Sequence record: OP123707.1
Length of the DNA stretch: 64,000 nucleotides
Direction: 5' to 3' (one strand)
The position numbers and the translations under genes are program-made. Each line of letters starts with the position of its first letter. Within the stretch, counting starts at the first letter, position 1. The notes below the pieces were generated by a model. It saw only the letters and a list, made by a program, of their open reading frames with translations. It had not been told where the DNA came from and made no database searches. Below are positions 25,543 to 45,326 of this stretch, piece by piece.

Positions 25543-25552
25543 ATTAATTCAC

Positions 25553-27539: not shown

Positions 27540-27541
27540 CA

Positions 27542-28406: not shown

Positions 28407-29002
28407 TGAGCAAGATCTATTTTTACACTAGCGCCATGAACTCAGGCAAGACCACCACAGCCATCCAAACAGCCTTTAATTATAAAGAGCGTGGGATGTA
28501 CCCTTACGTCCTTAAACCGGTCGTGGATACTCGTGACGGCTGTCCTCGTACGCTATCTAGTCGTAGTGGAGCTAAATGGGATAACTGCATTCCTTTCCCG
28601 AAAGAAGGGTTGGGTGAGATGGAGTTGTGGTTACGTAATCCTGAGCAAGCTCCAGACGTCATCATTATCGATGAAGTGCAGTTCATCAGTGTTGAGCAAA
28701 TTGAAGCCCTGAGTTTGATTTGTGAAGAACGCGGTATCCCACTGTTATGTTACGGTCTGCGTAACAACTTCCAGGGTGGGGGTTTCCCAGCGTCTGATTG
28801 GCTATTGCGTCATGCATCGAGCATCAACATCGTGAAAGGGATGTGTTGGTGTGGGAAGAATGCAACCCACAACATGATGGTCATGGATGGGAAAGCGCAC
28901 TACGGTAACCCGGGTGAATCCGCAGTGGTGGTGGGCGGTAATGAAACGTATCATGCGGTGTGTTTAACCCACTTCCGTAGCGGTGAGTTCAAACGTCCTT
29001 AG
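28406..29002 (+). CDS. tdk: Thymidine kinase (TK1/bacterial type)
   Basis: SAMNSGKTT P-loop, IIDEVQF, CYGLRNNFQG, zinc ligands CWCG and YHAVCLTHF. Confidence 0.95.
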   Translation: MSKIYFYTSAMNSGKTTTAIQTAFNYKERGMYPYVLKPVVDTRDGCPRTLSSRSGAKWDNCIPFPKEGLGEMELWLRNPEQAPDVIIIDEVQFISVEQIEALSLICEERGIPLLCYGLRNNFQGGGFPASDWLLRHASSINIVKGMCWCGKNATHNMMVMDGKAHYGNPGESAVVVGGNETYHAVCLTHFRSGEFKRP

Positions 29003-29008
29003 CGGCAT

Positions 29009-29017
29009 GATTTTATG
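29009..29017 (+). promoter_or_regulatory. Putative late promoter GATTTTATG
   Basis: Recurring motif, ~100 nt upstream of the Ig-domain virion-type gene. Confidence 0.6.
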
Positions 29018-29120
29018 GTCTAGGGGCTGCTACCCAGCTCCTTGATTGCAGCTAAGTCCACTTAGAACTTTCCTGGGGAGGATTCGTTAAGAGTGTTCCC
29101 CAAGTTACAAGGAGATATTA
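29018..29120 (+). promoter_or_regulatory. Structured 5' leader with anti-SD
   Basis: Three consecutive stems, plus CTCCTTG (29038-29044) complementary to the RBS CAAGGAG (29108-29114). Confidence 0.45.
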
Positions 29121-30632
29121 ATGAAACACATCCGACAAATCCTTTTAGATAAAGCTGCGTTAATTCGTATTTCGCTAGCCGAATCCAAAGGGGATGCCGC
29201 TGACATCGCGCTTACTAAGTCTCGGTTTGAAAACCTAACCAATGACGAAGTTGAGTATTTAAGCATTACGGAGTCCCCGACGATCTCTCGCCGTTTTATC
29301 GGTAAGATTCGTATTTCAGCTCGAGACAGTTTCGAGTTTGTCCAGAAGTGGTCTCCAGGTGATCTCGTGACCATTCTTAACACCGAAGGAACTACTGTCA
29401 TTCCTTCTTACGACAGTTTCGATGAGTTCGTTGCAGTCCCAGGAAAATATTTGGTCGAAGACATTAATGAATTGTGTCTGGTGGTTAAAGACGTTTCTAC
29501 GATTGAAGAGATTCAAGAACTCTTAGGTTTTGAATTCGAACCGGGTGAATTAGAGTTAAATCTGAAACACCTGAAAATCGATTCTCCGATCGTCGAAGGT
29601 ACCATGCCGATTAAAGAGCAAATTGCTACTCCAGACGGCACCGTGACTGATGGCTCTGCTATTGACGTGGTGGATGAAACCGGTGGAACCTTCATCATTC
29701 CTGCCAACCCGCACGCCAGTGAACAACCGATTACCATTGAACGTATAAACGTTCCGCCTCCTTTCAGTGACGAGATCAACAACAAAGCAAAAGGTCGTTT
29801 TGTTGGAGATCACCGTAACAATGAAGTTATTGAAGGTACCTTGGACGCTGAGAAGAAATGGAAACCGGATCTTAAGGTTAAACACCAAAAAGGTAAAAAA
29901 GTAAAACTTGAAGTTACCGTTGGTGTGGATGCTGATAAAGTAACTAACGAATATTCAGTGGAATACATTAATGAAAATTGGCGTATCGATGCATACAGTG
30001 TGGAAGCACCTGTTCGTCGTGTCGGTCATCCATTTGATTTAGTGGGTACGGTTATTGGTGATCTAGGCTCGACTCCATGGGGTGACGATACTACAGACCC
30101 AGGCATTTTCATAGAAGAGGCTGGAGAAGACGCGGTTGAGTTTGCGTTTGAACCAGACGATTCGTTCGACCTTGCACACATCCCTGTGGTTGAGGGTGAC
30201 ATGACGGTTCGTTTTGTTTGTGGTTTGACTCAAGACCTCAACTACTTCACTGAAACCTTCACGATCTTGGGCCCTCTCCAAGAAACTGATTTGACGTTCG
30301 GTGCTTTAGCGGTAGATCAAACTGAAGTGGAAGTATCCGTACCGGTGACGTTCACAACCACATTGCTTTCAAGCGATGGTCTGACTATGGAGTCGGCGGT
30401 TGTAGACGTGGTGGTGGATGGTGTAGTGTTGGGTCAAGTCTCCCCGGATGCAGAAGGTAACATCACCTACGTGTTATCTTCTTCAGACACTCCATCAACT
30501 TATGACGTTTTACTACGCCTTGGTGCACAGGAATCAAATGCAGTTACCCTAACTGTAGGTGGTGGTGGTGCTGAAGGTCCTACTGGTGTAGAGATTGAAG
30601 ACAACGGTCAAACGTCTATTTTAGTTGAATAA
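29121..30632 (+). CDS. Acidic virion-type protein with C-terminal Ig-like domains
   Basis: The N-terminal ~165 aa resembles 33024..33479. The C-terminal half has Ig-like strand patterns (APVRRVGHPFDL; QTEVEVSVPVTF..STYDVLL..SNAVTLTV). Confidence 0.65.
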   Translation: MKHIRQILLDKAALIRISLAESKGDAADIALTKSRFENLTNDEVEYLSITESPTISRRFIGKIRISARDSFEFVQKWSPGDLVTILNTEGTTVIPSYDSFDEFVAVPGKYLVEDINELCLVVKDVSTIEEIQELLGFEFEPGELELNLKHLKIDSPIVEGTMPIKEQIATPDGTVTDGSAIDVVDETGGTFIIPANPHASEQPITIERINVPPPFSDEINNKAKGRFVGDHRNNEVIEGTLDAEKKWKPDLKVKHQKGKKVKLEVTVGVDADKVTNEYSVEYINENWRIDAYSVEAPVRRVGHPFDLVGTVIGDLGSTPWGDDTTDPGIFIEEAGEDAVEFAFEPDDSFDLAHIPVVEGDMTVRFVCGLTQDLNYFTETFTILGPLQETDLTFGALAVDQTEVEVSVPVTFTTTLLSSDGLTMESAVVDVVVDGVVLGQVSPDAEGNITYVLSSSDTPSTYDVLLRLGAQESNAVTLTVGGGGAEGPTGVEIEDNGQTSILVE

Positions 30633-30719
30633 CAAAATCCCTAACGGGAACAGTGGTTTAAAAAGACTATAAGTAGAATAAGGTAGGAGGATAAAACCTC
30701 CTACCTTATTTATTTTAAA

Positions 30720-30731
30720 ACCTATATTACT
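30720..30731 (+). promoter_or_regulatory. Putative early promoter ACCTATATTACT
   Basis: Exact motif, immediately after the terminator ATAAGGTAGGAGG/CCTCCTACCTTAT (30678-30709). Confidence 0.75.
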
Positions 30732-30772
30732 TGAGTGTAAAGGACGTCAATTTACACTTTTGGGGAAGAAAC

Positions 30773-31531
30773 ATGACCAAACAACATCATGAATTTTGTA
30801 GTGATTTTAAAGAGTTAATGGTTTCTTTATCGTGGCTAGGGCAGTTAGTGAGCTATGTTAAGGAATTCGGTGCTTATGAAGATCAACGTCTCTTAGTAAC
30901 CGACAACATCGCATTCGGCATCCATTATGAACCTTATGGTGCGCATTATTTTTATTTGGACGAACAAGGAATAAGAACTGAAATCGTACTGAATAAAAAT
31001 GGACGTGTTCCGTTGGTTAAGGTGATTACGGGATTACGAGAATTACTCGTTGGCAATCCAGAGTTATTCCGTTTGATGGTGGAGAATGCACAGGGCTTAA
31101 AGTACATCATCAAAAAGCAGTACGCAGAACTGATGCGTGAACACAGTGAAGATCTTTCTGACCGTTTGTTGTCCTTTGGTTTTTCGGATTACAAAAAGGT
31201 CGTAGAAACCGATCTGGTGACGAGTTCCCGTGACTGGGTAACATTATGGGCTTGGTTCTTTACTCGCCCGTATATCGCCGCACAGTTCGGATTAGGGCAT
31301 GATGAGTCCATTACGTTAGGTGTCTCAACTACCCAACCACGGACCCGATACTACCGAGAGTGTAAAGTGAACTTAATGCGAGGCGATATGGATCATTACT
31401 ATATCACATTGCATTTCGAAACGCTCAAGAGTACCGAGACCGCCATTCTTTACCGCCACCTAGAACCGTCCTTCTGGTCGGATAACGAAGTGGAAACTAT
31501 CCAACTTATCAAAAGCATTTGTAAAGGTTAA
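30773..31531 (+). CDS. Hypothetical protein (early)
   Basis: ATG 30773 with GGGGAAG RBS; the track's TTG start lies within the promoter. Confidence 0.7.
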   Translation: MTKQHHEFCSDFKELMVSLSWLGQLVSYVKEFGAYEDQRLLVTDNIAFGIHYEPYGAHYFYLDEQGIRTEIVLNKNGRVPLVKVITGLRELLVGNPELFRLMVENAQGLKYIIKKQYAELMREHSEDLSDRLLSFGFSDYKKVVETDLVTSSRDWVTLWAWFFTRPYIAAQFGLGHDESITLGVSTTQPRTRYYRECKVNLMRGDMDHYYITLHFETLKSTETAILYRHLEPSFWSDNEVETIQLIKSICKG

Positions 31532-31579
31532 GCGCTAAGGTTGTCGAAAGACAACCTTAGCCTACCACTAGGAGCTATC

Positions 31580-32614
31580 ATGGAAATTTTATCTAAAGTT
31601 ATTACTACCACTCTTGACGAATTGGACGAACAAGTCAAACCGTTTTTAATTGACAAAGAGTCCTTACACGAGTTCGGGGCAATCGATCACGTTCAGTGGC
31701 GATTTAAGTATTACCCTAAAACGGACATTGAACGTCAGTACACCAATCTGGATACCCACTACGACATCGATGATCAAGAACTCGATATCTTCGCTGGGTC
31801 TTTCCCTTTACGCATTGTGACTCGTTACGTGAGTGTGCAATCTCTGGCGGACTGGATCCCAAAGAGTCGTACCGCACCTTGGCTGGATGCGTATTTGGAT
31901 TACGCGGTGACCATGAAACAGATTTGTGATGTCATGGCAAAACTGGGACCGTTGGATGAACCATTGAAATACGAACTGAATCTGCACGGGTTTGTGAGTA
32001 TCGTGTTCAAACGTACCGCCGAAGGACGATTCCAAAACATCTTCCGCCCAACGCCATTAGTGAACTTGCTTTCACAATATGACGTGGAAAGAGGTTCTAT
32101 GTACCCTAGGAGGATAGCGGACTGGTTCCGATTGAATCCTGGGTTGGGTCGTGAGGTTGTTCTAGAGCTCCGTAAACAGTTCTTTTTATTGGAAGGTGTC
32201 GTAGCTGAAGAATATCGCGCTCCTAAAGCGTTGAGAGCGATGTTTGAGTTATTTAAAGGTAATGACTCACAGAAATACATGTCGACGTATGGGCACCTTC
32301 CTGCGCCTCGTATGGCATCGTCTCACCGTGGGGTAAAATACATTTGTGGGGTCGAGCGTCGGGATTACGATTTGGTCGTTTATGTGCGTTCAGATAAAGA
32401 GGATCTTTGGACGTTCAACATGAGCACTATGGAGTGGGACTACCCGTCGTCACAGCTCTTACCATCGGACTACTTATTTATCCAGAATTTAACTCACGTT
32501 TGTTTTGGGCATTACTTAAACCAATCCGAGGCTGAACCGATTCGTAAAGTTCAGCTTGCCCGTCAATTCAAAGATTTTATGATCTCACCAACAGAAGGAA
32601 ATGATCGTGTATAA
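31580..32614 (+). CDS. Hypothetical protein
   Basis: AGGAG RBS before ATG 31580. Confidence 0.7.
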   Translation: MEILSKVITTTLDELDEQVKPFLIDKESLHEFGAIDHVQWRFKYYPKTDIERQYTNLDTHYDIDDQELDIFAGSFPLRIVTRYVSVQSLADWIPKSRTAPWLDAYLDYAVTMKQICDVMAKLGPLDEPLKYELNLHGFVSIVFKRTAEGRFQNIFRPTPLVNLLSQYDVERGSMYPRRIADWFRLNPGLGREVVLELRKQFFLLEGVVAEEYRAPKALRAMFELFKGNDSQKYMSTYGHLPAPRMASSHRGVKYICGVERRDYDLVVYVRSDKEDLWTFNMSTMEWDYPSSQLLPSDYLFIQNLTHVCFGHYLNQSEAEPIRKVQLARQFKDFMISPTEGNDRV

Positions 32615-32936
32615 ACAAGATTTAGAGATTTACCGTGGAAACGTTGATACCTTTGGCACTCGTCCAACTGGAAAATACTTTCATGTGGACAAACATGAAG
32701 TGTTGATGATCACTCGTATGTGTGATGAGTCGGGGGAAGATAACCTACCTCCGGTAGAAGACGACAAACTCCCTAAACATTTGCAAGAGTTCTTTGGTCA
32801 AGTGAAAGAAGTCTTTGAATGTGAAGATGTGTTAGACATGGTTGGTGTTGCTCCTAACGACGCACCATTCGATCACATGTGGGTGTTGGGTGACTACGTT
32901 GTTTGTCTCAACGTTAAACCATTAAGCGATAAATAA
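32601..32936 (+). CDS. Hypothetical protein
   Basis: GAAGGA RBS; overlaps the previous gene end. Confidence 0.7.
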   Translation: MIVYKQDLEIYRGNVDTFGTRPTGKYFHVDKHEVLMITRMCDESGEDNLPPVEDDKLPKHLQEFFGQVKEVFECEDVLDMVGVAPNDAPFDHMWVLGDYVVCLNVKPLSDK

Positions 32937-33023
32937 GTTTTTACTCCGTGTACCGATTTTATTGATCGAAAAACTTCACTTCTCACAAACAGAAAATCAA
33001 TAAAAATCAATAAGGTACACATT

Positions 33024-33479
33024 ATGAAAACTTCTTTAGTAACAGCAATTCAAGGTCTGGTTAGTAAGCAGCAACCTGAAGTATTGGAAGGTGACTTCAA
33101 TGTCGACCTAGACACAATACAACAGAACTGCGACTACCCGGACCGTTTTACTGCTGAAGGGTTCTTAAACGGTAAACGTATTCCGTTGGCTTGGAAACGT
33201 GTTAGCTTCACGGCTCTGTTAAACTCTGTTTCACAAGGCTTTGTTGCTCGTGATGACGCGGACCAGGAAGGTGTGTTTTATGATGGTAAGATCATGCACC
33301 ACTACATCGCTGTTCGCCCTAACCACAACCTGGACGACGTTAACCGCATCTTAGGATCCCAATTTACAAAAGACCAATTGCTCTTTAAACCGGAGCGAAT
33401 GGAAGGACGATGGGTATTAGACCACCCATGTTACTACGGACGTATATTTACTCAAGTCTTGCTTCCTAAAGCGAGCTAG
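33024..33479 (+). CDS. Stand-alone paralogue of the N-terminal domain of 29121..30632 (probable virion protein)
   Basis: WKRVSFTALLNS vs WSPGDLVTILNT; AVRPNHNLDDVNRILGSQFTKDQL..LDHPCYYGRI vs VVKDVSTIEEIQELLGFEFEPGEL..IDSPIVEGTM. Confidence 0.6.
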   Translation: MKTSLVTAIQGLVSKQQPEVLEGDFNVDLDTIQQNCDYPDRFTAEGFLNGKRIPLAWKRVSFTALLNSVSQGFVARDDADQEGVFYDGKIMHHYIAVRPNHNLDDVNRILGSQFTKDQLLFKPERMEGRWVLDHPCYYGRIFTQVLLPKAS

Positions 33480-33499
33480 CTATGTAAGGTTTTACAACC

Positions 33500-34021
33500 A
33501 TGAAACAAGAACAAATATTCAATAAAGTGGTTTCAGATTTCAGCGCAGGCGTGTTAGGTTTCCGTAATGGTAATCAGACACAGGCTTTAAACAACATCGC
33601 CAATCATCTTCGATCGGCACGCCATGGGCTACGACGCAGCATTCAACCTATGGCAGGTAAACAACCTCTTACGGTGAGCAATTACTTGGAGATCTCGATT
33701 GACCTTAAGTCTTTTCGTACGGATCTTTGCAGTAAGCTGTCGCTAGGTGAGGGTGTTAACCTTCGTGAGTTACCAATCAAATCTCCACTTACTGAAGTCT
33801 TGCGTGAAGACTACTTCCGACACGTTTGCATTGAAGCTTATCGTAAAGCTAAACGCGAAGAAGAACACTACTTTACGGGAGAGACGTTGCATGAGCGTTT
33901 TATCGACGAGCTCAACAACCAACTCCCAGAAGGTGCACGCTTGGGCTTAAGTGGTTCGATCCATCGCCCTCATACTCCACACACCAGTTTCGTATTGAAG
34001 CTGACTGATCTCGTGGAGTAA
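33500..34021 (+). CDS. Hypothetical protein
   Basis: 173-aa ORF with AAGG RBS, co-directional cluster. Confidence 0.65.
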   Translation: MKQEQIFNKVVSDFSAGVLGFRNGNQTQALNNIANHLRSARHGLRRSIQPMAGKQPLTVSNYLEISIDLKSFRTDLCSKLSLGEGVNLRELPIKSPLTEVLREDYFRHVCIEAYRKAKREEEHYFTGETLHERFIDELNNQLPEGARLGLSGSIHRPHTPHTSFVLKLTDLVE

Positions 34022-34025
34022 GCTT

Positions 34026-34514
34026 ATGAACACCAATCTTTCAATTGATCTCGGAATCGAGGAAGGAGATTCCACGAAGTACGAAGTCGGTCAGTATTGG
34101 TGTGTCGTAAAAAGAGCAGGTGGTCAATTGACCGGAACGGTTGGTTCCTCTGGAAAGGGGAACCAGCTTACTAAATCTATTGCTTTTTCAATATTTCGTC
34201 CTGTTAGCGACGATGACCTCATAGCGGTATATAGTGAGTGGCTAACAAACGTCAAGTTGTACTACACACACTCAAAGCGAACGTATCGATTCGTTTTAAC
34301 TGTACTCAAGGCTTTACTTTCCAATTACACCCAACGCATTTGGCCTATCGTTTATCGTAATCGCAGCACCTCATTGTTGTTAACCGATAATCGCATGGTG
34401 ACCATCAAAATAGATGGACAACGTCCAACCTCGATGGCACTCGAACACTGGAATCCAGCTATACTGGAACATCGCTTATTCCCCTACGCCAAATTAAAAC
34501 AAACTCTTATTTAA
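34026..34514 (+). CDS. Hypothetical protein
   Basis: 162-aa ORF, 4 nt after the previous stop. Confidence 0.65.
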   Translation: MNTNLSIDLGIEEGDSTKYEVGQYWCVVKRAGGQLTGTVGSSGKGNQLTKSIAFSIFRPVSDDDLIAVYSEWLTNVKLYYTHSKRTYRFVLTVLKALLSNYTQRIWPIVYRNRSTSLLLTDNRMVTIKIDGQRPTSMALEHWNPAILEHRLFPYAKLKQTLI

Positions 34515-34524
34515 GGAATTTCCC

Positions 34525-35046
34525 ATGACAAACATTATTGAAACTATCGAACCTTTTGTAGGTCGCACCTTTATGTACTCCACCATGACTGAGTCTTCTA
34601 TCTCTGCTCATTATGATGGTCACAAAGCCCACCTAATGATCCAGATGGATGACGGGAAAACAGTCCGTACGATTCGTCGCCAATATTCCCGCAAGTTCCT
34701 AGACCAGTTCGCTGGCTTTGGTAAATGGAACGAAAACAATTTAACTCAAGTCTTGTTAGGGATTTACATTCTGGATCCTAAGGGTCTTTACCAATTAACT
34801 CGAGCGCCTCGTGAATGTTTATCAGCACTCATCGATACGTATCGTAAAGACTTCATGTTGACAGGCACGCTGTTCTACATGACCCTCGAACTCACCAAGG
34901 ACACATTGAAAGTCACCAGTCAACGTCAACCAGATATTTATATACAAACTCGCAGCATTAAAGAAGTCACTAAAACCACGTACGCTCCAGTGATGACGCT
35001 GGGGTTTAATCATACTCCTCGTCGTCGTGTTCACGTGGAAGCATAA
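34525..35046 (+). CDS. Hypothetical protein
   Basis: 173-aa ORF with AAGGA RBS. Confidence 0.65.
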   Translation: MTNIIETIEPFVGRTFMYSTMTESSISAHYDGHKAHLMIQMDDGKTVRTIRRQYSRKFLDQFAGFGKWNENNLTQVLLGIYILDPKGLYQLTRAPRECLSALIDTYRKDFMLTGTLFYMTLELTKDTLKVTSQRQPDIYIQTRSIKEVTKTTYAPVMTLGFNHTPRRRVHVEA

Positions 35047-35047
35047 A

Positions 35048-35079
35048 TAACTACCCCTCCTTAACAGGAGGGGTAGTTA
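35048..35079. terminator. Bidirectional terminator
   Basis: TAACTACCCCTCCT/AGGAGGGGTAGTTA stem between convergent genes. Confidence 0.8.
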
Positions 35080-35098
35080 CTTTCATTTCTTTATTTTT

Positions 35099-37864
35099 TT
35101 AGAACAAGTCCATGAGTGCTTTAACCGTCACCGCTTTCATTGGAACTTGTTTGACTTCTTCCCACAAATCGAAGTTTTCGTCAAACAGATCTTCCATGCC
35201 AGCCACACCTACCATGGTAATGTCATCACCGTGTTGTACCGACATGATCTCCGCCACTTGTTGTTTACTCCATTCCATGATGTCGAGGTTACGCCCAGTG
35301 ACGTTTTCACGACCTTGGGTATCGAGTTCAAAGATGTAAGCGAACGTAGGGGCTGTTTGTCCTTGACGGTGTACACGCGCAATGGTTTGAGTCAAGATGT
35401 ACTCACGCCACGGTGCGTTCATACACAACACTTGGTTCGCCATCAATAGAGGATAGCCTGTAGATAGAGATTTGAACGTAGTGATCAATGGGTTCTTACG
35501 GTCACTGACTTCAAACTCTTTGACCAGCTTATCACGTTCATTGGTGTTATCACCGTGAATGAAGATGGTGTCGTAACCTTGTTGGGTTAAGTGGTCATCA
35601 CATTCGTAGACGACGTCAATGTGATCGGTAAAGATCAAAGTCTTTTTCTCAACGTGATCAATATACTTCGGTAAGTCCGCGTATTCCACTAAAGCTTTTA
35701 CGGCTTCGATGCGGGCTTTACCCAATACGTTACCCAACGCTTCCCCTTGGATCTTCAGACCAACGTACTTCACGATAGACTTCGCATTACGGAAATGTTT
35801 GCGCTCTTTAGGCGGCATCCATTCTTCAATGTCCAGTTCAATTTTCTTAGCACGTTTGGAGAGCTCCGAATCCGTGAAGTTGTTGTACCCATCACGACGG
35901 AACTTGTTGACGATGCGCAGATACTCGTCCAATTCGTTCAACGCTTGTTGATCGTTGCGTTTGGTTAAGTAAAGGCGATAGTCGTCAATGATCCCGTTGA
36001 AGTAAGTTATGAACTTATCCATGTTGTTGGAGTAATACGTGTAACGGTCTTGGATGTAGGTTCGCATCTGATTACGGACCGCATCTAAGGTGAAGTGTTC
36101 CGCATGTGGGACTTTCACTTTAATGCGTTCAGCGGGAGGTGCTTCCCCTAATCCATCCAAAACCGCAATGGTGTATTTCTCTGCACCGATACGGTGAGCG
36201 AGCAATTCATTCAACTTATCACGAGAGCGCCCGTAACCGTCCAGGAAGGCTTTTCTGACATTACCTTTAAAGAAGGCATCGATTAAGCAGAACACCGCGT
36301 AGGATTCCTTACCGAGCCCTTTGATCGGGGTACCAGACATTGGAAGGGTGTCGGTGAACCCGTGTTCTTCATTGAACTGAATGAGTTTCTTCGTACGCTT
36401 AGAGTTTGGATCGTTGAAGTTATGACACTCATCGATGATCATTTTCAGAGCTGGGTTCCCACGGTTCCAGTCGGCGATCTGACGCATGTACTTATCGGCT
36501 CGTGGATCCAACATGAACTCGTAGTGGAAGAAGTAGTATTCATCGTCCTTAGCTGGCGGACGTTCCATCTTAGAGTTCCAGAACTTCGGTGGCTTTACCC
36601 ACACTTCATGTTTGATGTTGTTGGTCATGTGGTTTGACCAAACTTCATCAATTACGTTCAGTGGAACAAACGCCACGGTCTTTCCTTTAGGAAGGGATTC
36701 CGACCACATCAATGACAACGCCGTATTGTGAGTTACGATGTAATCATCGGTGATGTACAAATGCTCAGGATGGTCCACCATGATGCATTGGGTTAGTTCT
36801 TGATCCACGACTTCAATGGATTCGATCTTAAGACGATTAAACCCAAAGTGGGCTTCCACTAACCAACGATCGCCAGATGGGAAGATACGACACTGATGTC
36901 CCAGACCACGAGTAATGTCAACAATTAGACGTGCTAAACGTTCGTCGTTAAAATACCCGTGGCACTTTCCAGGTTCCAAAATACCGCGAACCCAAGAGTA
37001 CAGTTCGTCGTTAGTACACTTGTGATGGAACTCAGGGTCGTAATGAATCCCACCGACTCGCAACATCATGCCTTGATTGTACCAACTCGGAATGAGGTCT
37101 TCTGGTATCGTATGTTCGATCATTGGAATGTAGTACGTGGTATCCTGCATAGTGTCCATGATTTCATGGGTTTCTTTAACTGACCACTCTTTCCCATCGT
37201 ATACCTTCCACAGGTGCTCTGGGTTACACTTGGTCTTACGACCATCACGGAACGTAATCTCGACAACATCTGTTACGCCTTGTGGGTAAACACCCAGTAC
37301 CGTTGTATAACCACCGTCTGGAGTCTCTAGGACCTTACCCGGGCGCATGTTACCCATAGTCTCCCAGCCACCAGGAACTTTGATCTTAGCTGTTAACGGT
37401 TGCGCTTTACCCGATCCTGCTCGACCATCCAACAGCAATCCTTTTAGATGGTAAGATGCTTTACGTGCTGGATAGGTTTCTAAGAAACGCAACTGAGGTT
37501 CTAGGGGCTTCAGTTTAACACGTTGTTGCATCTGCTTCAGGTTAAACGTAGAGATCGCTGGAACGATGGTATCACGAATCCACGTTTCTTGTTGGATTAA
37601 CTCTTTGACTTTCACCAACTCACGACGATTAGTTCGGGTAGTTTTTAACTGAAGTAATTTAGTTATTAGGTGATTAAGCTCCAATAGGAAAAATGACTTA
37701 ACTTCGAACTTACGAGAATTAATGCGAGTCAACATGTATTTCGTTACGGTAGTGGTTCCGTAAAGTCTTACGATGTCTTGTTCTAGGTGACGCCATGAAA
37801 CGCCACTGATAATTGCTCTACGGTCGTCGACTTCAATAGACGGTCCGAATAAACCACTAAACAT
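35099..37864 (-). CDS. SF2 (SNF2/DEAD-like) helicase, intein-containing (phiKZ gp75-like)
   Basis: Walker A GRAGSGK|T split by the intein; IIDECHN, MSGTP, IHGD, QTIARVHRQGQ. Confidence 0.88.
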   Translation of the reverse strand: MFSGLFGPSIEVDDRRAIISGVSWRHLEQDIVRLYGTTTVTKYMLTRINSRKFEVKSFFLLELNHLITKLLQLKTTRTNRRELVKVKELIQQETWIRDTIVPAISTFNLKQMQQRVKLKPLEPQLRFLETYPARKASYHLKGLLLDGRAGSGKAQPLTAKIKVPGGWETMGNMRPGKVLETPDGGYTTVLGVYPQGVTDVVEITFRDGRKTKCNPEHLWKVYDGKEWSVKETHEIMDTMQDTTYYIPMIEHTIPEDLIPSWYNQGMMLRVGGIHYDPEFHHKCTNDELYSWVRGILEPGKCHGYFNDERLARLIVDITRGLGHQCRIFPSGDRWLVEAHFGFNRLKIESIEVVDQELTQCIMVDHPEHLYITDDYIVTHNTALSLMWSESLPKGKTVAFVPLNVIDEVWSNHMTNNIKHEVWVKPPKFWNSKMERPPAKDDEYYFFHYEFMLDPRADKYMRQIADWNRGNPALKMIIDECHNFNDPNSKRTKKLIQFNEEHGFTDTLPMSGTPIKGLGKESYAVFCLIDAFFKGNVRKAFLDGYGRSRDKLNELLAHRIGAEKYTIAVLDGLGEAPPAERIKVKVPHAEHFTLDAVRNQMRTYIQDRYTYYSNNMDKFITYFNGIIDDYRLYLTKRNDQQALNELDEYLRIVNKFRRDGYNNFTDSELSKRAKKIELDIEEWMPPKERKHFRNAKSIVKYVGLKIQGEALGNVLGKARIEAVKALVEYADLPKYIDHVEKKTLIFTDHIDVVYECDDHLTQQGYDTIFIHGDNTNERDKLVKEFEVSDRKNPLITTFKSLSTGYPLLMANQVLCMNAPWREYILTQTIARVHRQGQTAPTFAYIFELDTQGRENVTGRNLDIMEWSKQQVAEIMSVQHGDDITMVGVAGMEDLFDENFDLWEEVKQVPMKAVTVKALMDLF
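36725..37405 (-). mobile_element. Class 3 mini-intein (227 aa) with degenerate LAGLIDADG remnant
   Basis: Starts AQPLTAKI after Walker A Lys153. Block B CNPEHLW, block F TQCIMV, block G IVTHN, +1 Thr. Confidence 0.88.
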
Positions 37865-37908
37865 ACATACCTCTTATTTAGATTATTAAAAGTGAAAAGG
37901 AAACAATA

Positions 37909-39264
37909 ATGACTAAGTCTACTAAACCTAACCATGATCTTTGGAAACTGTTTATTTACCTAGCTGAAGGTCTGAACGAAATGACGTTCTTCTTGGAAGG
38001 TACAGATGACGAAGGCATGCCAACACTTAACCACACGGGTGTTGCTCACGAAGACATGCACATCACTATCCAACCTCACGCTTACTTACCAATGACCCAC
38101 ATCCACATGGACATCAACCTTCCGGTGGAACTAACCGATGCACTAGCGGGCGATCTAACAAACAATCCAGTAGCGATTCGTTTACGCGATTACCTAACGG
38201 AACGTGGTAGCATCGATTACTTGGTCTACAATGAAATGGCACCGAACATCTTGAAAGAGATCGCTGACATTCAAGCGGTACTGCACGAACAAGAGCGTCC
38301 TAACTTGGAAGCGGTTCAACAAATGATTCACTACCTCAGCAACTTGATGATGAATGAACTTGATGCAAAAGTAGCTAAGAAAGCGAACCGTTACTACCCA
38401 CTGGCAATCAATCGTCTTCCTCGTATTACGGTAGATGAACCGTCAGAAGAATGGATCGAACGTACTTTCGGTGACATGATGTCGGGTGACGTATTCCACG
38501 CTGGTCATGTAGTGGTTCGTAACGCGAAACGCGTAGGTCGTCGACTAGGCAACATTGCTGAGATGGTTAACCGTTGGGGTAAAGAGACTCAAACCGAAAA
38601 AGACTTCGATCTGTGGTTCTCTCTCAACATTGAAGATCATAAAATCTCTCTTGGCTTAGACCGTCAACCTTACCAATCGGAAGAGAGCTTTGTCATCGAA
38701 CGCACACCAGTAAACATGGACGAATGGGATGACGCTGTTGATCTAGGTTTCATTCACTCAATCCAAAAAGAGATTGACGAGATGAACATCACGATCGCTA
38801 ACCTGTTGAACTACAACACAGGTTACGAGATGCTGAATAAGGAAATCGAACAGCTTTACATCCGCAACATCCATCACCCGGTAGCGAAACATACTGTCCG
38901 TGTTTGGGAGTTCGATGATCTGTGTCCATCAGGTCGTGCTAAGATTGATGAAGAGATCGCAGCAATCATGCAATTGGTTGAAGACAAAGCTACTGAGCTA
39001 GACGCTGAAGTGAAGTTGGACATTTCTAATATGTACCTGCATCAGAAAGCTGAAGGTGAAAACTTCATTCTGAATCAAGAGCATCAGGTCGTGGCAAAAC
39101 GTTGTCAGACTTACGCAGGTACGTTCTTCGATTCTCTGCAACAGTACCTGTACGATGTGGAAACGCCGTTGTTCGGTCCTTACACTCACGTAACTCCAGC
39201 AGACCTAGGTAATCAAACAGTCATCTCTGAAACTGACCTTCTGGACGCTCCTACTCTACATTAA
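37909..39264 (+). CDS. Hypothetical protein
   Basis: 451-aa ORF with AAGGA RBS, divergent from the helicase. Confidence 0.75.
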   Translation: MTKSTKPNHDLWKLFIYLAEGLNEMTFFLEGTDDEGMPTLNHTGVAHEDMHITIQPHAYLPMTHIHMDINLPVELTDALAGDLTNNPVAIRLRDYLTERGSIDYLVYNEMAPNILKEIADIQAVLHEQERPNLEAVQQMIHYLSNLMMNELDAKVAKKANRYYPLAINRLPRITVDEPSEEWIERTFGDMMSGDVFHAGHVVVRNAKRVGRRLGNIAEMVNRWGKETQTEKDFDLWFSLNIEDHKISLGLDRQPYQSEESFVIERTPVNMDEWDDAVDLGFIHSIQKEIDEMNITIANLLNYNTGYEMLNKEIEQLYIRNIHHPVAKHTVRVWEFDDLCPSGRAKIDEEIAAIMQLVEDKATELDAEVKLDISNMYLHQKAEGENFILNQEHQVVAKRCQTYAGTFFDSLQQYLYDVETPLFGPYTHVTPADLGNQTVISETDLLDAPTLH

Positions 39265-39265
39265 G

Positions 39266-39274
39266 GATTTTATG
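39266..39274 (+). promoter_or_regulatory. Putative late promoter GATTTTATG
   Basis: Recurring motif upstream of the single-Ig-domain gene. Confidence 0.6.
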
Positions 39275-39317
39275 TGGTCGAGGCTATTTTCGGCCCATAA
39301 ATCAATAGGAGATTATA

Positions 39318-39608
39318 ATGTCAGCTCTATTAGCAGAACTGAACGCGCCAAGTAAAGTGAGTCGTAATGACGACATTGTACTTCGAGGTAAATTCGATGG
39401 TTTAGCTCAACCGCACTTAGTGAAGGTTTTCTTTAATGATGAAGAAATTGACGGTCATGTGTACACTGACCAACAAGGTTTCTTCCAAGCGGAATTCCCT
39501 GCTAAAGTAAACAAGGCGGGTAACTACCCTATCCGTATTGTAATGGTAGAGAATACTGAATCAGGTACAGAAGTCTCTGGTGAAACAACGATTCGTGTGA
39601 CTCGTTAA
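39318..39608 (+). CDS. Single Ig-like domain protein
   Basis: APSKVSRNDDIVLRG..VKVFFN..FQAEFP..AGNYPIRI..TTIRVT beta-sandwich pattern; AGGAG RBS; flanked by a late motif and a terminator (~39618-39649). Confidence 0.6.
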   Translation: MSALLAELNAPSKVSRNDDIVLRGKFDGLAQPHLVKVFFNDEEIDGHVYTDQQGFFQAEFPAKVNKAGNYPIRIVMVENTESGTEVSGETTIRVTR

Positions 39609-39684
39609 TTTAAGTTAATATCCTGTACCCTCATCGGGTACAGGATATTACTTTATTTTTTTTGCTTTTAGTAAATAAAAACAG

Positions 39685-39695
39685 ACCTATATTAC
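39685..39695 (+). promoter_or_regulatory. Putative early promoter ACCTATATTAC
   Basis: Recurring motif heading the 39755-46284 gene array. Confidence 0.72.
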
Positions 39696-39754
39696 CTATG
39701 TGTATGACCATCATACATAACCCATTTACTTCATTTAAAAGAAGGACAAACACC

Positions 39755-40543
39755 ATGTCAAACTACATCAAAGATTTTATCAGCGAAGGCACTTACTTTG
39801 AAGAAGGCCAACCAATCAACTTCATGTTCTCAGTTATTGATGCTGAGGGTGCGAGTGTCACTATTACCGCGGAAGGCAACCAAGTCCTCAAAGAAGACGT
39901 GACTGACTACAAACAAAAGTTTCGAGTCTCCTTCCCGGCAAATAAAGAATCAACTCAAGTTGAAATCAGCGTGGATTACTTAACGGGTCAGATCGATAAG
40001 AAGACCTTACGGTTCCAAGCCGTGGATCCTACCGTCTACCGATCACAACAGTTGATCAACATCGGTTTCAAAATCGAAGACATCAATAAACTGATTTCGG
40101 TTTTCACACACAGTGCTTGGTCTGAGTGTTTGAAACGTCCAATGGAAGAACAAGAGCGACGCGAACTATTAGCGTTTGCAACGCCGTCCTTTGAATATTG
40201 CGTCGAACTGTTTCAAGACGAGATTCCTTACTTGGAAATCAAGCTAACCAATCATTCTGGCGAGACACATACGGTTCGCACGGAATTAAAAGGTTGGGGA
40301 GTAACCGCGTATTCTCTATTGGGACAAATAGCCACAGAAGCGGGACTTATTTTAGCAAAAGACCTTTCCCATAAGTCTACCCTTAATGTGGTCTTGGCGT
40401 TGGCGAAAGACCCGTGTTACTCGGACTCGGTAAAAGAAGCACTGGTGGCGACCTTCACTTTAGCGTCACCGAAACCGATTATTGGGATGCGCCGTATCGT
40501 AAAGACCACCGACCTCTTCAAAAACGAAGAATCATCTATCTAA
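39755..40543 (+). CDS. Hypothetical protein with N-terminal Ig-like domain
   Basis: ATG 39755 with AAGGA RBS; VTDYKQKFRVSFPAN resembles YTDQQGFFQAEFPAK of 39318. Confidence 0.6.
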   Translation: MSNYIKDFISEGTYFEEGQPINFMFSVIDAEGASVTITAEGNQVLKEDVTDYKQKFRVSFPANKESTQVEISVDYLTGQIDKKTLRFQAVDPTVYRSQQLINIGFKIEDINKLISVFTHSAWSECLKRPMEEQERRELLAFATPSFEYCVELFQDEIPYLEIKLTNHSGETHTVRTELKGWGVTAYSLLGQIATEAGLILAKDLSHKSTLNVVLALAKDPCYSDSVKEALVATFTLASPKPIIGMRRIVKTTDLFKNEESSI

Positions 40544-40562
40544 CTTTAAATAAGGAAATACC

Positions 40563-42053
40563 ATGGATAAGCATTTAAGAATCTTCATGAACAACATGAT
40601 CGCACTAACCGATGAAATAGCGAGAAACACATCTTGTCGCTCCCCGTACTTAAACATGCTCAAAGCCAACTTTGAAGACGCGTTACTTCCGGTCGAGTTC
40701 CAGTGCATCAACGACGTCAACCAAGTGGGGATTATTCGATATGGATTCACTAACGGTCAATTCCCTGAATGGGCTGAGCGTGATCTCCCTGACTCAATCA
40801 AAGCGTGGGAAGAATTGATCAACAACAGTGAAGATAGCAGATGGTTCATTGAAGAAAAACATGTGGTTTTTGATCTGGGTTGGTGTAAGGCCCGTCTGAA
40901 CACAGGTTTCAGTGGCTGGCATTACCATCTGTCCTTCCCGGATCAAGAGATCACAACCCTTCAAAAATGGTTGGAACCTAACAATAAGTTAACGAATGAA
41001 TTCAACCGTCATTTGGCTAACTTGGTTGGGATTGAACATCCGCTGTTTGAAGAAGATGTGATTAAAGAACACGGTGCAGCGGTTCAAAAATTCCGTGATG
41101 GGGTGTTGCATATCTTAAACACCTTCGTCAAACAAGACCGTCTTCCTTTCTTTACCAACAACCGTATAAAAGTTTCTTACGGTAATGTGGATAAATCCAT
41201 GCCACAAACTGGTGAAGAACAAAGCGATGAGTTCTTCTTATCCTTACACTACGGGGAGTGGCACATCCGTGTATTCCAAGATGGTGAGGTGGGAGTTCAG
41301 CGCTACGTCTCAGGGAACTGGTCAATCTTTGATTTGAACAACCCTAAAGTGGCGACACGCCGTTTGATGGGGCATTTGTCTCAGGTACTCGATGTCGATG
41401 TCGATGTGGAATCAGAGCTCGTTCATCCTACTTTAAGTGCGATTGAGGCTTGTAGTGATGCTCGTCCTGATTATGGGTTCTTCCCAGCCGCGAGCTTCAC
41501 CACTAATGTGACAGATGAAACCAGTTTGTCCATGAGCAAAACCACCTCGGTGTACAGCAAAAACCCACTTCCAGAAGATCGTCTGGTCGACCTTAAAAAG
41601 GTATGCAGTCTCTTAAGTAAATCCGCCAACTTGAAAGGAGCGCAAACGGATAAGCTATTTAGATTGAGCATGAAGGTGGGGGCAGAGCACGTGATTGATT
41701 TTGCACGTGATTATGATTTGGATTTCGAAGTAATGGGCGCGCACCGCTTTACTGTTTACGAACCGAATAATAACGAACCTCTGTTCCGTTGGTCGGTGAA
41801 CCCTGGAAACATCGAAGCACTCCGTAAAACACTGTCCACATTAATCGGAGCCGAGGTGGAGTATCTTCATTCTTACGAAGGTGATCTAGAAGAACCGTTG
41901 GATAACTTACGTAAGCTTCAGAATGACCATTCCACGACGTTCTACATTCCTAACCCACCTAGATCTTTTGATGTGGACCGCATCAATGCTGCGATCGCTA
42001 ACATCAACAAACTGGGTACTTTGAAAAAGTTTGTTTCTTGCATCTTACTGTAA
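40563..42053 (+). CDS. Hypothetical protein
   Basis: 496-aa ORF with AAGGA RBS. Confidence 0.75.
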   Translation: MDKHLRIFMNNMIALTDEIARNTSCRSPYLNMLKANFEDALLPVEFQCINDVNQVGIIRYGFTNGQFPEWAERDLPDSIKAWEELINNSEDSRWFIEEKHVVFDLGWCKARLNTGFSGWHYHLSFPDQEITTLQKWLEPNNKLTNEFNRHLANLVGIEHPLFEEDVIKEHGAAVQKFRDGVLHILNTFVKQDRLPFFTNNRIKVSYGNVDKSMPQTGEEQSDEFFLSLHYGEWHIRVFQDGEVGVQRYVSGNWSIFDLNNPKVATRRLMGHLSQVLDVDVDVESELVHPTLSAIEACSDARPDYGFFPAASFTTNVTDETSLSMSKTTSVYSKNPLPEDRLVDLKKVCSLLSKSANLKGAQTDKLFRLSMKVGAEHVIDFARDYDLDFEVMGAHRFTVYEPNNNEPLFRWSVNPGNIEALRKTLSTLIGAEVEYLHSYEGDLEEPLDNLRKLQNDHSTTFYIPNPPRSFDVDRINAAIANINKLGTLKKFVSCILL

Positions 42054-42104
42054 TTGAATCAAAGGGGAGTTAATAGCTCCCCCATTATTAAAGGATTTAT
42101 AACA

Positions 42105-42959
42105 ATGAACAATTTGGCTACTGAAATCATCTACACTGACCACACTCGTAAATCCGCTAACGGTATTTATATTTACGCGGACTCAAGTTTGTATGGCAAT
42201 CGATTAAACGTCATTGTTTCAGATGACGAAACGGAACAAACCGAGTTGGGGATGGAAATCGATAACGTGGATTGCGGCTTAACCGTTTACGATGAAATCT
42301 TAGAGACCAACATCGTACTGGCTACGATCTCCACCCGCAGTTTAAGTAAACTGAGTGACAACTATTTCATCAAAGTTCGTTTGTTTGATAATGAAGATCA
42401 GTTGGTGGGAGAAGCGGGCCCATTTTACGCGACCATTGATGAAGAGATTGACGTGGGTTCTATCATCGTTGAACGTCGCACTAAATCGTTGTTGCGTTTA
42501 AGCACAATGTTGAGTGCGTTGGACTACATGGTGGGTGAAGAACAAGTGACCGTAATGGACACTTACATCGGTGGATGTCACTTTGAACTGAACATTACTG
42601 AGGGCAACTACGTCGCCACCATCAGCGAAGAACTGGACATCCAGTTGGAAACTATTCGTGCGTTAACTTCGGTAGATTTGATCCGTAAGTTGAACGACAG
42701 TGACCACGGTGGGTTCATACTAGACTCGGGATTGATCTTTGATCGATTCATTAAACCGGTTCAGTTTGGCGAAGACCGATGTTTAGCTAACCGTTATCGA
42801 ATGATGGAGGACTTTACTTACAAAAACATCGACATGGTGTACACGTTCGGTCTAGCGAAAACAAAGCGAGATTCTGCGTTCCTAAAAGAACTTAACTCAC
42901 GTCCTTACAAATACGCTTTTGTAAAAGAAAAGGAATCGGTGGATGAATCAGATGTCTGA
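42105..42959 (+). CDS. Hypothetical protein with N-terminal Ig-like domain
   Basis: ATG 42105 with AAGGA RBS; beta-rich N-terminus with DNYFIKV strand. The C-terminal RLS..L..G..FE pattern is shared with 43844. Confidence 0.6.
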   Translation: MNNLATEIIYTDHTRKSANGIYIYADSSLYGNRLNVIVSDDETEQTELGMEIDNVDCGLTVYDEILETNIVLATISTRSLSKLSDNYFIKVRLFDNEDQLVGEAGPFYATIDEEIDVGSIIVERRTKSLLRLSTMLSALDYMVGEEQVTVMDTYIGGCHFELNITEGNYVATISEELDIQLETIRALTSVDLIRKLNDSDHGGFILDSGLIFDRFIKPVQFGEDRCLANRYRMMEDFTYKNIDMVYTFGLAKTKRDSAFLKELNSRPYKYAFVKEKESVDESDV

Positions 42960-43266
42960 ACCTTTTGAAATTGTCGACTTCCAAGATTTCTTAGCCAAAG
43001 AACTCAGTAAGTTGGGGCAGCCTTCTAAATACACTACGTTACCGGAGTTGTATGAGGAGTATTCGGTTCCTTTTGGGAAATCCATGTTAGGTTACTTAAA
43101 ACAGTTTGATGTGGATTCTCGTTGGTTACACGACGCTTACGGATTAGATTTCCGTAAGAACAAGAAAGGGAATTGGGACGTGTTTTTGAATGAGATGGTG
43201 GGAGAGTTTCTTCATTTCAATTCAGGGGACCAACCAATCATGACTTTAACTTTAACTGGTGAATAA
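42943..43266 (+). CDS. Hypothetical protein
   Basis: 107-aa ORF overlapping the previous gene end; AAGGA RBS. Confidence 0.65.
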   Translation: MNQMSEPFEIVDFQDFLAKELSKLGQPSKYTTLPELYEEYSVPFGKSMLGYLKQFDVDSRWLHDAYGLDFRKNKKGNWDVFLNEMVGEFLHFNSGDQPIMTLTLTGE

Positions 43267-43326
43267 GTTTTAATGGAGTGGTCAATTAATAGGTCACTCC
43301 TTATTTTTTTAATCATAGGACGTATT

Positions 43327-43851
43327 ATGAAAGTCGATCTTCGACCAGCCGAGGCGTTGTTCTTAACGTTAGATGCCGCGGTTAAAATGCTAAGCAACCC
43401 TGAGTCCAAATTGAAAGAACTCGTGATGGAATCCCATCAACGTAAATACAACATGGTCTTGGTGGATGGGTTCAATCCTAAAGAGTGTTGGTTCCGTGAT
43501 TTTAACATCACGTTGTGTTTGTCGTATGACTCTATACGACAAGAACGCATTGCTTTATTTACACTCCGAGATGAGGACTTAGCGAACCACGAAAATGTCA
43601 TCAGCATTGACATCAGTGACAACACACGTCCTTTGTCGGAACACTGGGAAGCGTTGTTGCGCATCATGGCGTATCATTACCCAGAAACTTTACAACGTAT
43701 TGCGGAGTCCGGGGATCACATCGATCGACACCGCGTGTACGACGAAATAGACCGAGAACGCGGTCTTTACAAATTTTGTGATTTCCAAAAATCGCAGTAC
43801 GAATCTTTAGTAAGTTTATTTACAGACTTAGAGGAACCAGAACATGACTAA
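43327..43851 (+). CDS. Hypothetical protein
   Basis: ATG 43327 with AGGA RBS; HWEALLRIM resembles QFEALLRLL of 44652. Confidence 0.65.
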   Translation: MKVDLRPAEALFLTLDAAVKMLSNPESKLKELVMESHQRKYNMVLVDGFNPKECWFRDFNITLCLSYDSIRQERIALFTLRDEDLANHENVISIDISDNTRPLSEHWEALLRIMAYHYPETLQRIAESGDHIDRHRVYDEIDRERGLYKFCDFQKSQYESLVSLFTDLEEPEHD

Positions 43852-44671
43852 ACGTTTATTCTCATTCACCACCAGCAAAGAACTCCACCATCGTGGTGAA
43901 ACCATTTCCGTTCACCCTAACCACCGTACCTTAGGTGAATTGGAAAACTCTTACGAACTCCATGCCGAAGTTCTTATCAACGGGGAACCGATTGGTGGTG
44001 GAATGGGGTTGCATGATATCAACTACTGTCTTATGGATTACGAAGAAGATCTATTGGGTAAGACTTACCAACTGAACGTTCGCATCAAACGCGGGGATGA
44101 GATTGTCCGTGTCAGTGATACGATGGAGATGGAGTGTGGCACTCTATTGTCGGTCGAGACGCAAGACACTATGGCGCTAGCTTCGGGCTACGATTGGATC
44201 AGTCGTTTATCTCGCGCACTGGCGTTGATTCATGAGTCTTACAGTAAACGTGAAGACGAAGACCGAATTAAGTTATTCGGTTGGGAAGTTGGTCCTTACT
44301 ACTTTGAGTTTTACTGGGGTGGTGAGCAGATGGGTGTGAAAGGCATTGAGCTGGATGTTTCTCCAACTCACAACATGGATAACATCACCTCGTTCTTCAT
44401 TGACTCTTCTAGTATTCTCTCTGTTTCTCGTAGCTTCAATGAGATTTTCTATCATGAAGTGAAAGCGTGGATGGTTCATCCGGCGTTCCGTATTATGATG
44501 GTGGAACAACCCATCGGGAATGACCTTATTCACCACTACCAATTCTTAGTGGCGATTATCGCGGCCGATTCCCCAGCGTTATCTCTTCCAATGGGTCTGC
44601 GAACACTGAGTCGTGTAGCTTCTGAAGAATCAAGAAAAATTGGAGTGACTAATGGATATCAAGCTGGCTAA
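43844..44671 (+). CDS. Hypothetical protein with N-terminal Ig-like domain
   Basis: ELHHRGETISV..AEVLING..KTYQLNVRI strand pattern; GAGGA RBS. Confidence 0.6.
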   Translation: MTKRLFSFTTSKELHHRGETISVHPNHRTLGELENSYELHAEVLINGEPIGGGMGLHDINYCLMDYEEDLLGKTYQLNVRIKRGDEIVRVSDTMEMECGTLLSVETQDTMALASGYDWISRLSRALALIHESYSKREDEDRIKLFGWEVGPYYFEFYWGGEQMGVKGIELDVSPTHNMDNITSFFIDSSSILSVSRSFNEIFYHEVKAWMVHPAFRIMMVEQPIGNDLIHHYQFLVAIIAADSPALSLPMGLRTLSRVASEESRKIGVTNGYQAG

Positions 44672-45317: not shown

Positions 45318-45326
45318 GGGTGCAAA

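Follow-up and report, generated by a model that had tools for sequence, protein, structure and literature searches.

A putative class 3 mini-intein with a LAGLIDADG endonuclease relic in the Walker A motif of a helicase from the jumbo Vibrio phage phiKT1028

The stretch of DNA considered here (the window) comprises 64,000 nucleotides of sequence record OP123707.1 and corresponds, at 100% identity, to Vibrio phage phiKT1028 ("Ariel"), record coordinates being window coordinates plus 62000. This phage is a marine Vibrio chimallivirus, a jumbo phage of the genus Tidunavirus in the Gorgonvirinae, and a viable isolate for which the formation of a phage nucleus has been shown experimentally (PMC10587174). 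The window contains a gene for a DNA helicase in which an insertion separates the Lys from the Thr of the Walker A motif, and the evidence assembled below points to this insertion being a class 3 mini-intein with the relic of a homing endonuclease in its interior (Table 1). The open reading frame has been deposited as UVD32165.1, "DNA helicase", without intein annotation, and the paper describing phiKT1028 mentions neither the helicase nor an intein (PMC10587174).

The helicase is conserved across chimalliviruses. The phiKT1028 protein matches PHROG 62 "DNA helicase" (6.9e-119) and Pfam Helicase_C (3.1e-10), with weak matches to SNF2-rel_dom and ResIII, and PDB counterparts of its C-terminal lobe are of the SNF2/Rad54 type (ATRX, Sulfolobus Rad54-like, DDM1). 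The intein-free orthologue of phage pTD1 likewise matches SNF2 proteins of the PDB and is above the ResIII threshold, scoring 38.8 bits versus a sub-threshold 21.4 bits for phiKT1028; judged by these scores, the N-terminal helicase lobe appears recognisable again once the element is removed.

Table 1. Helicase gene of phiKT1028 and the features of its insertion, in window coordinates (residue numbers are those of the precursor unless given as intein residues; aa, amino acids)
Feature	Position	Strand	Basis
Host gene, 921-aa superfamily 2 (SF2) helicase with SNF2/Rad54-like C-terminal lobe	35099..37864	minus	single long open reading frame; OP123707.1 97099-99864
N-extein, aa 1-153, ending in the Walker A part GRAGSGK (37406..37426)	37406..37864	minus	alignment with intein-free alleles
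Class 3 mini-intein (predicted), 227 aa, aa 154-380	36725..37405	minus	alleles, homology, model
C-extein, aa 381-921 and stop codon, rest of helicase core including Helicase_C	35099..36724	minus	Pfam
Intein residue 1, Ala (non-nucleophilic block A1)	37403..37405	minus	Ala in 81/100 aligned family members and 204/290 copies
Block B, NPEHLW, with His64 (B10) and Trp66 (B12, W of WCT); EHLW is intein aa 63-66	37208..37225	minus	
Cys60 (block B6), just upstream of NPEHLW, four residues before the block B His	37226..37228	minus	
Block F, TQCIMV, intein aa 205-210; Cys207 (F4; 36785..36787), predicted initiating nucleophile	36776..36793	minus	
Block G, Thr225-His226-Asn227 (G5-G7): T of WCT, penultimate His, terminal cyclising Asn; VTHN is intein aa 224-227	36725..36733	minus	
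+1 Thr, Thr381 of the precursor, Walker A Thr of GxxxxGK[T], predicted C-extein nucleophile	36722..36724	minus	
Degenerate LAGLIDADG homing-endonuclease domain between the splicing halves, intein aa 76-190	36836..37180	minus	alignments, hhalign, superposition
Remnant of first LAGLIDADG motif, IPSWYNQGMMLRVGG	37049..37093	minus	aligns to first motif of full-length inteins
Remnant of second LAGLIDADG motif, LYSWVRGILEPGK	36965..37003	minus	aligns to second motif of full-length inteins

The limits of the insertion were defined by aligning helicase orthologues from twelve phages. GRAGSGK occupies aa 147-153, and the insertion that follows (window 37405..36725) is in frame, begins with AQPL and ends with VTHN, after which come Thr and the remaining helicase core. 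A reading of the DNA made from the sequence alone (the sequence-only reading) had placed a 227-aa insertion between GRAGSGK and T at 36725-37405, and both coordinates and length proved exact. It had also proposed a survey of intein-free alleles, and four phages, pTD1, Aphrodite1, USC-1 and Klebsiella phage Miami, carry precisely such an allele, with an uninterrupted GSGK-T(A/S/F). At the DNA level the empty site reads GGTAA(G) followed by AC(G/C), and the element sits between these codons, precise at the codon level. The same 227/228-aa element occurs in VP4B, PDCC-1, Vibrio phage 2 TSL-2019 and phiKT1019, and elements of other lengths are found at the identical position in Pseudomonas phage EL (262 aa), Shewanella phage FishSpeaker and Aeromonas phage CF8 (355 and 358 aa). 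The frame is open in five of the five Gorgonvirinae intein copies. A group I intron or another element acting at the RNA level was also considered and was rejected on the grounds that the frame is open and that the product has a HINT fold.

Class 3 inteins have been defined by a non-nucleophilic residue 1 that co-varies with a Trp at block B12, a Cys at F4 and a Thr at G5 (the WCT triplet), together with a Thr or Ser at position +1 (PMC2807308; PMC5050341). The sequence-only reading had assigned the insertion to this class from an Ala at residue 1, the three motifs EHLW, TQCIMV and VTHN and a +1 Thr; all are present, alignment to the experimentally characterised class 3 intein Msm DnaBi1 of Mycobacterium smegmatis pairs the WCT residues with their counterparts, and class 3 inteins are the best structural matches. 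The insertion thus shows Ala1, Trp66, Cys207, Thr225 and Thr+1, and it has the block B His64 and the C-terminal arrangement of an intein, His226-Asn227 followed by Thr+1. In an alignment of 100 relatives, His64, Trp66, Cys207, Thr225, His226 and Asn227 are each invariant, Tyr217 is kept in 99, and the +1 residue is Thr in 97 and Ser in three. A cysteine is found at the position of Cys60 in 58 of the 100 family members; at the neighbouring B7, a cysteine occurs in 45 and the usual Thr is absent. Two other assignments were considered. A class 1 intein is ruled out by the Ala at residue 1, where Cys, Ser or Thr is needed. Class 2 (KlbA-type) inteins combine Ala1 with a Cys+1 that attacks the N-terminal junction directly, and they lack the WCT triplet (PMC2807308); a class 2 intein is ruled out here because the +1 residue is Thr and not Cys and because WCT is present.

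When the insert was compared with PDB sequences by phmmer, all significant matches were to inteins, namely gp41-1 (7e-6) and its engineered WCT variant (3.8e-8), and the class 3 inteins Msm DnaBi1 (6e-6) and Mch DnaB1 (4.6e-5), the identities of these entries being taken from PMC7664689. Residues His64, Trp66, Cys207, Thr225, His226 and Asn227 are equivalent to H65, W67, C118, T137, H138 and N139 of Msm DnaBi1, and Tyr217 to its Tyr128. An AlphaFold2 model of 235 residues, built from the alignment of 100 family members for the insert plus four extein residues on each side, has a mean predicted local distance difference test score (pLDDT) of 95.1 and a predicted template modelling score (pTM) of 0.90. 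In Foldseek, class 3 inteins came out on top (6riy, 2.5e-8; 6bs8, 9.7e-8), and the 51 PDB matches at E<=1e-3 were essentially all inteins, bacterial intein-like (BIL) or hedgehog domains. VIA-align gave a Z score of 19.9 and a root-mean-square deviation (rmsd) of 1.5 A over 123 residues for 6bs8, and a Z score of 19.7 for 6riy. On this model the insert has a HINT fold. Separately, PHROG profiles named after a "DnaC-like helicase loader", a "terminase large subunit" and a "DNA primase" give E-values of 2e-13 to 8e-10 against the intein; these profiles evidently contain intein segments, so that such matches say nothing on function and could mislead annotation.

The interior of the intein was described in the sequence-only reading as an eroded LAGLIDADG remnant containing LYSWVRGILE, a segment that is present at intein aa 135-144, and three comparisons bear this out. 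In a MAFFT alignment with the FishSpeaker and CF8 inteins and with metagenomic full-length inteins, IPSWYNQGMMLRVGG falls on the first motif (e.g. ...PYLMGVLLGDGSLSG) and LYSWVRGILEPGK on the second (...LLQGLLDTDGTSG), and RLARLIVDITRGLG pairs with a helix, ...LA..VQ.LVRSLGG, that is conserved in these inteins. Pfam LAGLIDADG_3 (PF14528) is above threshold in the FishSpeaker (2.7e-9) and CF8 (4.9e-7) inteins; the same Pfam scan gave no PF14528 match in the phiKT1028 or EL inserts. When six sequences of the insert were compared by hhalign with the endonuclease part of the inteins of 14 full-length relatives, the probability was 89.6% and the E-value 1.9e-6, the alignment being anchored on the second motif and the helix that follows it and leaving the first motif unpaired. 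Finally, when the model was superposed on PI-SceI, 224-232 of its 235 residues could be matched to the full-length structure and 137 to domain I by itself, so that the ~90 further residues correspond to endonuclease-domain structure. Sequence and model together make it well supported that the interior is a shrunken LAGLIDADG homing endonuclease relic.

An active endonuclease of this type has two LAGLIDADG motifs that each end in a catalytic Asp or Glu and lie in a complete pair of alpha-beta-beta-alpha-beta-beta-alpha half-domains, and the phiKT1028 interior does not have this make-up. The positions of Asp53 and Asp150/Asp152, invariant in the 14 full-length relatives, lie here in LRVGG and ILEPGK, where the catalytic position lacks an acid, and the insert is ~128 aa shorter than that of FishSpeaker. 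Since both catalytic acids have been lost, the element is most likely no longer self-mobile, and the earlier description of it as probably immobile, which was speculation, is in this respect reasonable. The relic is nevertheless confidently folded in the AlphaFold2 model (pLDDT >90). Across the intein the non-synonymous divergence (dN) is low and the synonymous divergence (dS) saturated, which makes dN/dS ratios unreliable, and only dN values were compared. The splicing halves have a dN at the low level of the exteins. In the relic it amounts to 0.07 in the comparison with VP4B and to 0.31-0.42 in that with the Aphroditevirus copies, with 0.09-0.16 for the exteins, that is, above the exteins yet far under the saturated synonymous divergence; the relic is not in free decay.

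Identities computed from the multiple sequence alignment suggest how the element has been inherited. Between phiKT1028 and VP4B the intein is 89% and the extein 85% identical, between PDCC-1 and TSL-2 the values are 92% and 96.5%, and between genera they are 60-66% and 81-84%; intein and extein identities are congruent. The extein of pTD1 is 91.6% identical to that of VP4B, which bears the intein, all five Gorgonvirinae copies have the same reduced architecture, and the intein (GC content 46.8%) differs little in composition from its surroundings (45.2%). The simplest history, drawn from these identities and not from a tree, would be a single ancient acquisition with decay of the endonuclease before the split of Tidunavirus and Aphroditevirus, followed by vertical inheritance; pTD1 and the lineage of Aphrodite1 and USC-1 would then have lost the element precisely or had their intein-bearing allele replaced by an empty one.

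The abundance of the family was assessed by an exhaustive HMMER scan with the 227-aa insert over 1.84 billion cluster representatives, which returned 8,507 matches at E<=1e-3, a number that falls to 4,234 at E<=1e-10 and to 45 at E<=1e-30; the weaker matches surely include other intein classes. In the 246 best-matching proteins, 290 intein copies were located, every one with Thr at G5 and Asn at G7. H-x-W is present in 289 of them, Cys at F4 in 288 and Thr or Ser at +1 likewise in 288; 230 lie after Gly-Lys, and the complete class 3 signature is found in 270. At least two copies of the phiKT1028-type family occur in one polypeptide in 45 of 243 metagenomic proteins. According to precomputed Pfam matches the host proteins include SNF2 and DEAD-type helicases, DnaB, PhoH, ClpB/AAA+, SMC/RecN-like, TraD-like and RecA proteins, and the family targets P-loops; a minority of copies is inserted after Pro-Gly and begins with Pro (for example in PhoH-like proteins), which constitutes a second target site. 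The sequence-only reading had called class 3 inteins uncommon; this holds for curated collections only, the phiKT1028 family being very abundant in phage-like metagenomic proteins. The helicase intein is therefore a typical member of a known and abundant kind and is new only as an unannotated instance.

Of 50,697 phage records, 207 also have a relative, the proteins concerned being helicases, terminases and replication proteins, and none of the listed features of these 207 records carries an intein annotation. About 50 records of Stx2-converting phages contain a related intein segment (e.g. LC616031.1 18449-19429; HM208303.1 14548-14808), either with no annotated feature at the site or inside replication protein P, so that the family is also found in lambdoid replication genes. 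A six-frame scan of the window found no further inteins of the family, and two others, both unannotated, lie elsewhere in the phiKT1028 record. One, of ~290 aa, is in the "ATP-dependent DNA helicase" UVD32233.1 (OP123707.1 185882-189088; locus coordinates 1383-4589), where it follows PRQQGK, starts with Glu (ELSV), contains AEHLW, VC and THN followed by Thr, and ends in VCIEVDHPDHLYITNDFIVTHN before that Thr. The other measures 198 aa and interrupts the large terminase UVD32274.1 (OP123707.1 227958-230084; locus coordinates 1459-3585), where it follows QTGQGK, starts with AQPL, contains DEHLW, QC and THN, and ends in MQCIEIDHPEHLYVTDRYVVTHN before Thr. Both are P-loop inteins placed after Gly-Lys and before Thr, and belong to the same class 3 family.

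Taken as a whole, these data argue that 36725..37405 encodes a splicing-competent class 3 mini-intein at the "classic" Lys/Thr P-loop site, with an endonuclease relic and likely without self-mobility, and we give this reading a probability of about 0.87. [quoted passage not shown] Because residue 1 is Ala, no N-terminal acyl shift is possible; Cys207, activated with His64/Trp66 and Thr225, would instead attack the Lys153-Ala154 bond, and the N-extein would be held as a block F branched thioester before moving to the hydroxyl of Thr+1. Asn227, aided by His226, would then cyclise and release the intein, and an O-to-N shift would regenerate the GRAGSGKT P-loop. The precursor is expected to be devoid of ATPase activity because the Walker A Lys and Thr stand 227 residues apart in it, and an analogous statement has been made for P-loop inteins in RadA and DnaB (PMC6195587).

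Several points weigh against this reading. Block B7 is an Asn and not the usual Thr, and grafting of WCT onto gp41-1 did not lead to productive splicing, which indicates that WCT alone is no guarantee of activity (PMC7664689). The intein models of Pfam (Intein_splicing, Hint) and NCBIfam (the TIGR models for intein N- and C-termini) gave no match to the insert, alone or with its flanks, even at E<=10, the scans yielding sub-threshold noise only (e.g. SH3-C_UBE2O). The failure of these curated hidden Markov models (HMMs), which is probably why the intein annotation is missing, is a sensitivity gap of the models and is outweighed by the pairwise, profile and structural evidence. The intein identity between phiKT1028 and VP4B lies slightly above that of the extein, which could hint at recombinational exchange, and the element may be mobile in trans through the active endonuclease of a related intein during co-infection. 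Lastly, the essentiality of the host helicase is assumed, and its spliced form is a prediction from sequence and model.

The alternative that survives best, itself raised in the sequence-only reading, is that of a conditional switch in which oxidants or zinc would reversibly block splicing at Cys207 and so gate the helicase, and perhaps the two other intein-bearing ATPases, according to conditions in the infected cell. This is speculation by analogy to Msm DnaBi1, a homologous class 3 P-loop intein with demonstrated redox and zinc inhibition: H2O2 inhibits it reversibly through a Cys48-Cys118 disulfide (PMC6195587), and zinc does so through Cys118, the Val119 backbone and Tyr128 as ligands (PMC7360933). 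The zinc ligands Cys118 and Tyr128 are kept as Cys207 and Tyr217, and this conservation makes inhibition in vitro by zinc and thiol oxidants plausible; a second cysteine, Cys60, is also available here as in many relatives, the others in the intein being at 130, 148 and 172. The disulfide partner Cys48 is, however, replaced by Val47 here and by Ile or Val across the family, and any catalytic thiol would be chemically sensitive to oxidants and zinc without adaptation. Moreover, the closest relatives pTD1, Aphrodite1 and USC-1 do well without the intein, which argues against a needed regulatory role. Because such sister phages thrive without it, a physiological regulatory role is unlikely, and a selfish, constitutively splicing relic is the default.

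A bolder proposal, and a more doubtful one, is that the three class 3 P-loop inteins of phiKT1028 (in the SNF2-like helicase, the second helicase and the terminase), each dependent on one catalytic thiol, form a shared post-translational checkpoint, or that the relic has been given a new use. If the former were true, thiol oxidation, zinc or reactive chlorine would hold the transcription/replication and packaging ATPases inactive until cell conditions allow; if the latter were, a folded endonuclease relic still under purifying selection would have been put to new use.

It is quite improbable that the element is a splicing-dead relic which stays as an insertion domain in the mature protein or inactivates a dispensable helicase. 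Splicing is here a prediction from sequence and model, the standard intein HMMs fail to match, and inactive class 3-like inteins exist, an example being the Arthrobacter Arth_1007 "intein pseudogene" (PMC3196547). Yet all catalytic positions are intact and have remained invariant over lineages whose synonymous sites are saturated, the frame is open in every Gorgonvirinae copy, the low dN of the splicing halves matches that of the exteins, and a 227-aa domain lodged between the Walker A Lys and Thr would deprive a helicase that is otherwise under strong purifying selection of its nucleotide site. A class 2-like route, with the +1 residue attacking the N-terminal peptide bond directly and no block F intermediate, has in its favour the Ala1 shared with KlbA inteins (PMC2807308) and hardly deserves credence, given that class 2 uses Cys+1 and not Thr+1, that WCT co-varies with the missing N-terminal nucleophile and Thr/Ser+1 (PMC2807308), that Cys F4 is invariant, and that the nearest solved structures are class 3.

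Other observations concern the gene and its orthologues. In the GenBank annotation, the helicase gene is the sole minus-strand gene among ~40 plus-strand genes (window 11357..46284), and a divergent promoter of its own, directed towards the gene at 37909, is probable. In Pseudomonas phage PA1C (MK599315.1, locus positions 289-3443), the orthologous helicase is annotated as two overlapping coding sequences (289-1332 and 1272-3443), which points to a frameshift, an error in sequencing or a gene with an intein that was annotated wrongly. In phiKT1019 (MZ622713.1, locus positions 301-3060), the annotated coding sequence starts at locus position 430 (876 aa) and homology extends in frame from 301 (919 aa); judging from this, the annotated start is probably too far downstream.

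For a phage that is being developed for aquaculture therapy, these results correct the annotation of a core helicase, whose mature form is predicted to have ~694 aa, with a free 25-kDa intein, and not 921 aa. They also show that the curated intein HMMs are blind to a very abundant class 3 P-loop family, which leads to systematic non-annotation in phage genomes, and the three-intein load of the nucleus-forming phage phiKT1028 is a useful by-product. The natural series at one site, with intact-endonuclease, degenerate mini-intein and empty alleles, suits the study of intein decay, persistence and loss in jumbo phages, and class 3 mini-inteins with Thr+1 have some use as protein-engineering parts. 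No new mechanism is opened, and a specialist would be unsurprised to find a class 3 mini-intein in the P-loop of an SNF2-like helicase from a phage.

Among known systems, the Msm DnaBi1 and Mycobacterium chimaera (Mch) DnaB1 inteins (6bs8, 6own, 6rix, 6riy) likewise sit in the P-loop of a helicase, use the hydroxyl residue of the P-loop as +1 and have the same catalytic residues, namely His B10, Trp B12, Cys F4, Thr G5 and His-Asn; structurally they match best, with Z scores of 19.7-19.9, an rmsd of 1.5-1.8 A and 27-28% identity within the aligned core. The phiKT1028 intein differs from them in its host, a phage SF2/SNF2-like helicase and not a bacterial DnaB, in a +1 Thr instead of Ser, and in retaining a ~115-aa LAGLIDADG relic where they are minimal (~139-145 aa); overall, its sequence resembles that of Msm DnaBi1 only to a low degree (E 6e-6). 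The original class 3 set, which includes the Mycobacteriophage Bethlehem DnaB intein, has defining features that match the phiKT1028 intein (PMC2807308), and its founding hosts were helicase-type ATPases (DnaB, RecG, SNF2, phage terminase) interrupted mostly at the P-loop (Tori et al. 2010, PMC2807308); MP-Be starts with Pro1, in contrast to Ala1 here, and belongs to a different phage lineage. Kelley et al. (2016, PMC5050341) describe the Lys/Thr position as "classic" for P-loop inteins, and the TerL1-a "classic" P-loop inteins of mycobacteriophages are likewise phage-borne, their class 3 members having a conserved WCT (PMC5050341), and are hosted by a terminase, unlike the helicase intein; phiKT1028, too, has a TerL intein of this kind, located outside the window.

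Among inteins of solved structure, the one nearest in sequence to the N-terminal half is gp41-1, a cyanophage-like metagenomic split intein (6qaz; WCT variant 6riz), which shares Thr G5 with the phiKT1028 intein but is a naturally split class 1 intein with Cys1, Phe B12 and Asp F4. A Deinococcus radiodurans Snf2 intein is reported to have been placed in class 3 by Brace and colleagues in 2010 (cited in PMC5222942). The helicase inteins of FishSpeaker, CF8 and EL are allelic to that of phiKT1028, lying in the same gene at the GK/T(S) site with Ala1, HLW (HVW), QC and VTHN, and the EL intein probably has an entry in InBase. From the FishSpeaker and CF8 inteins, whose LAGLIDADG motifs are intact, the phiKT1028 intein is separated by 29-37% identity, by ~128 aa less sequence and by the loss of both catalytic Asp residues.

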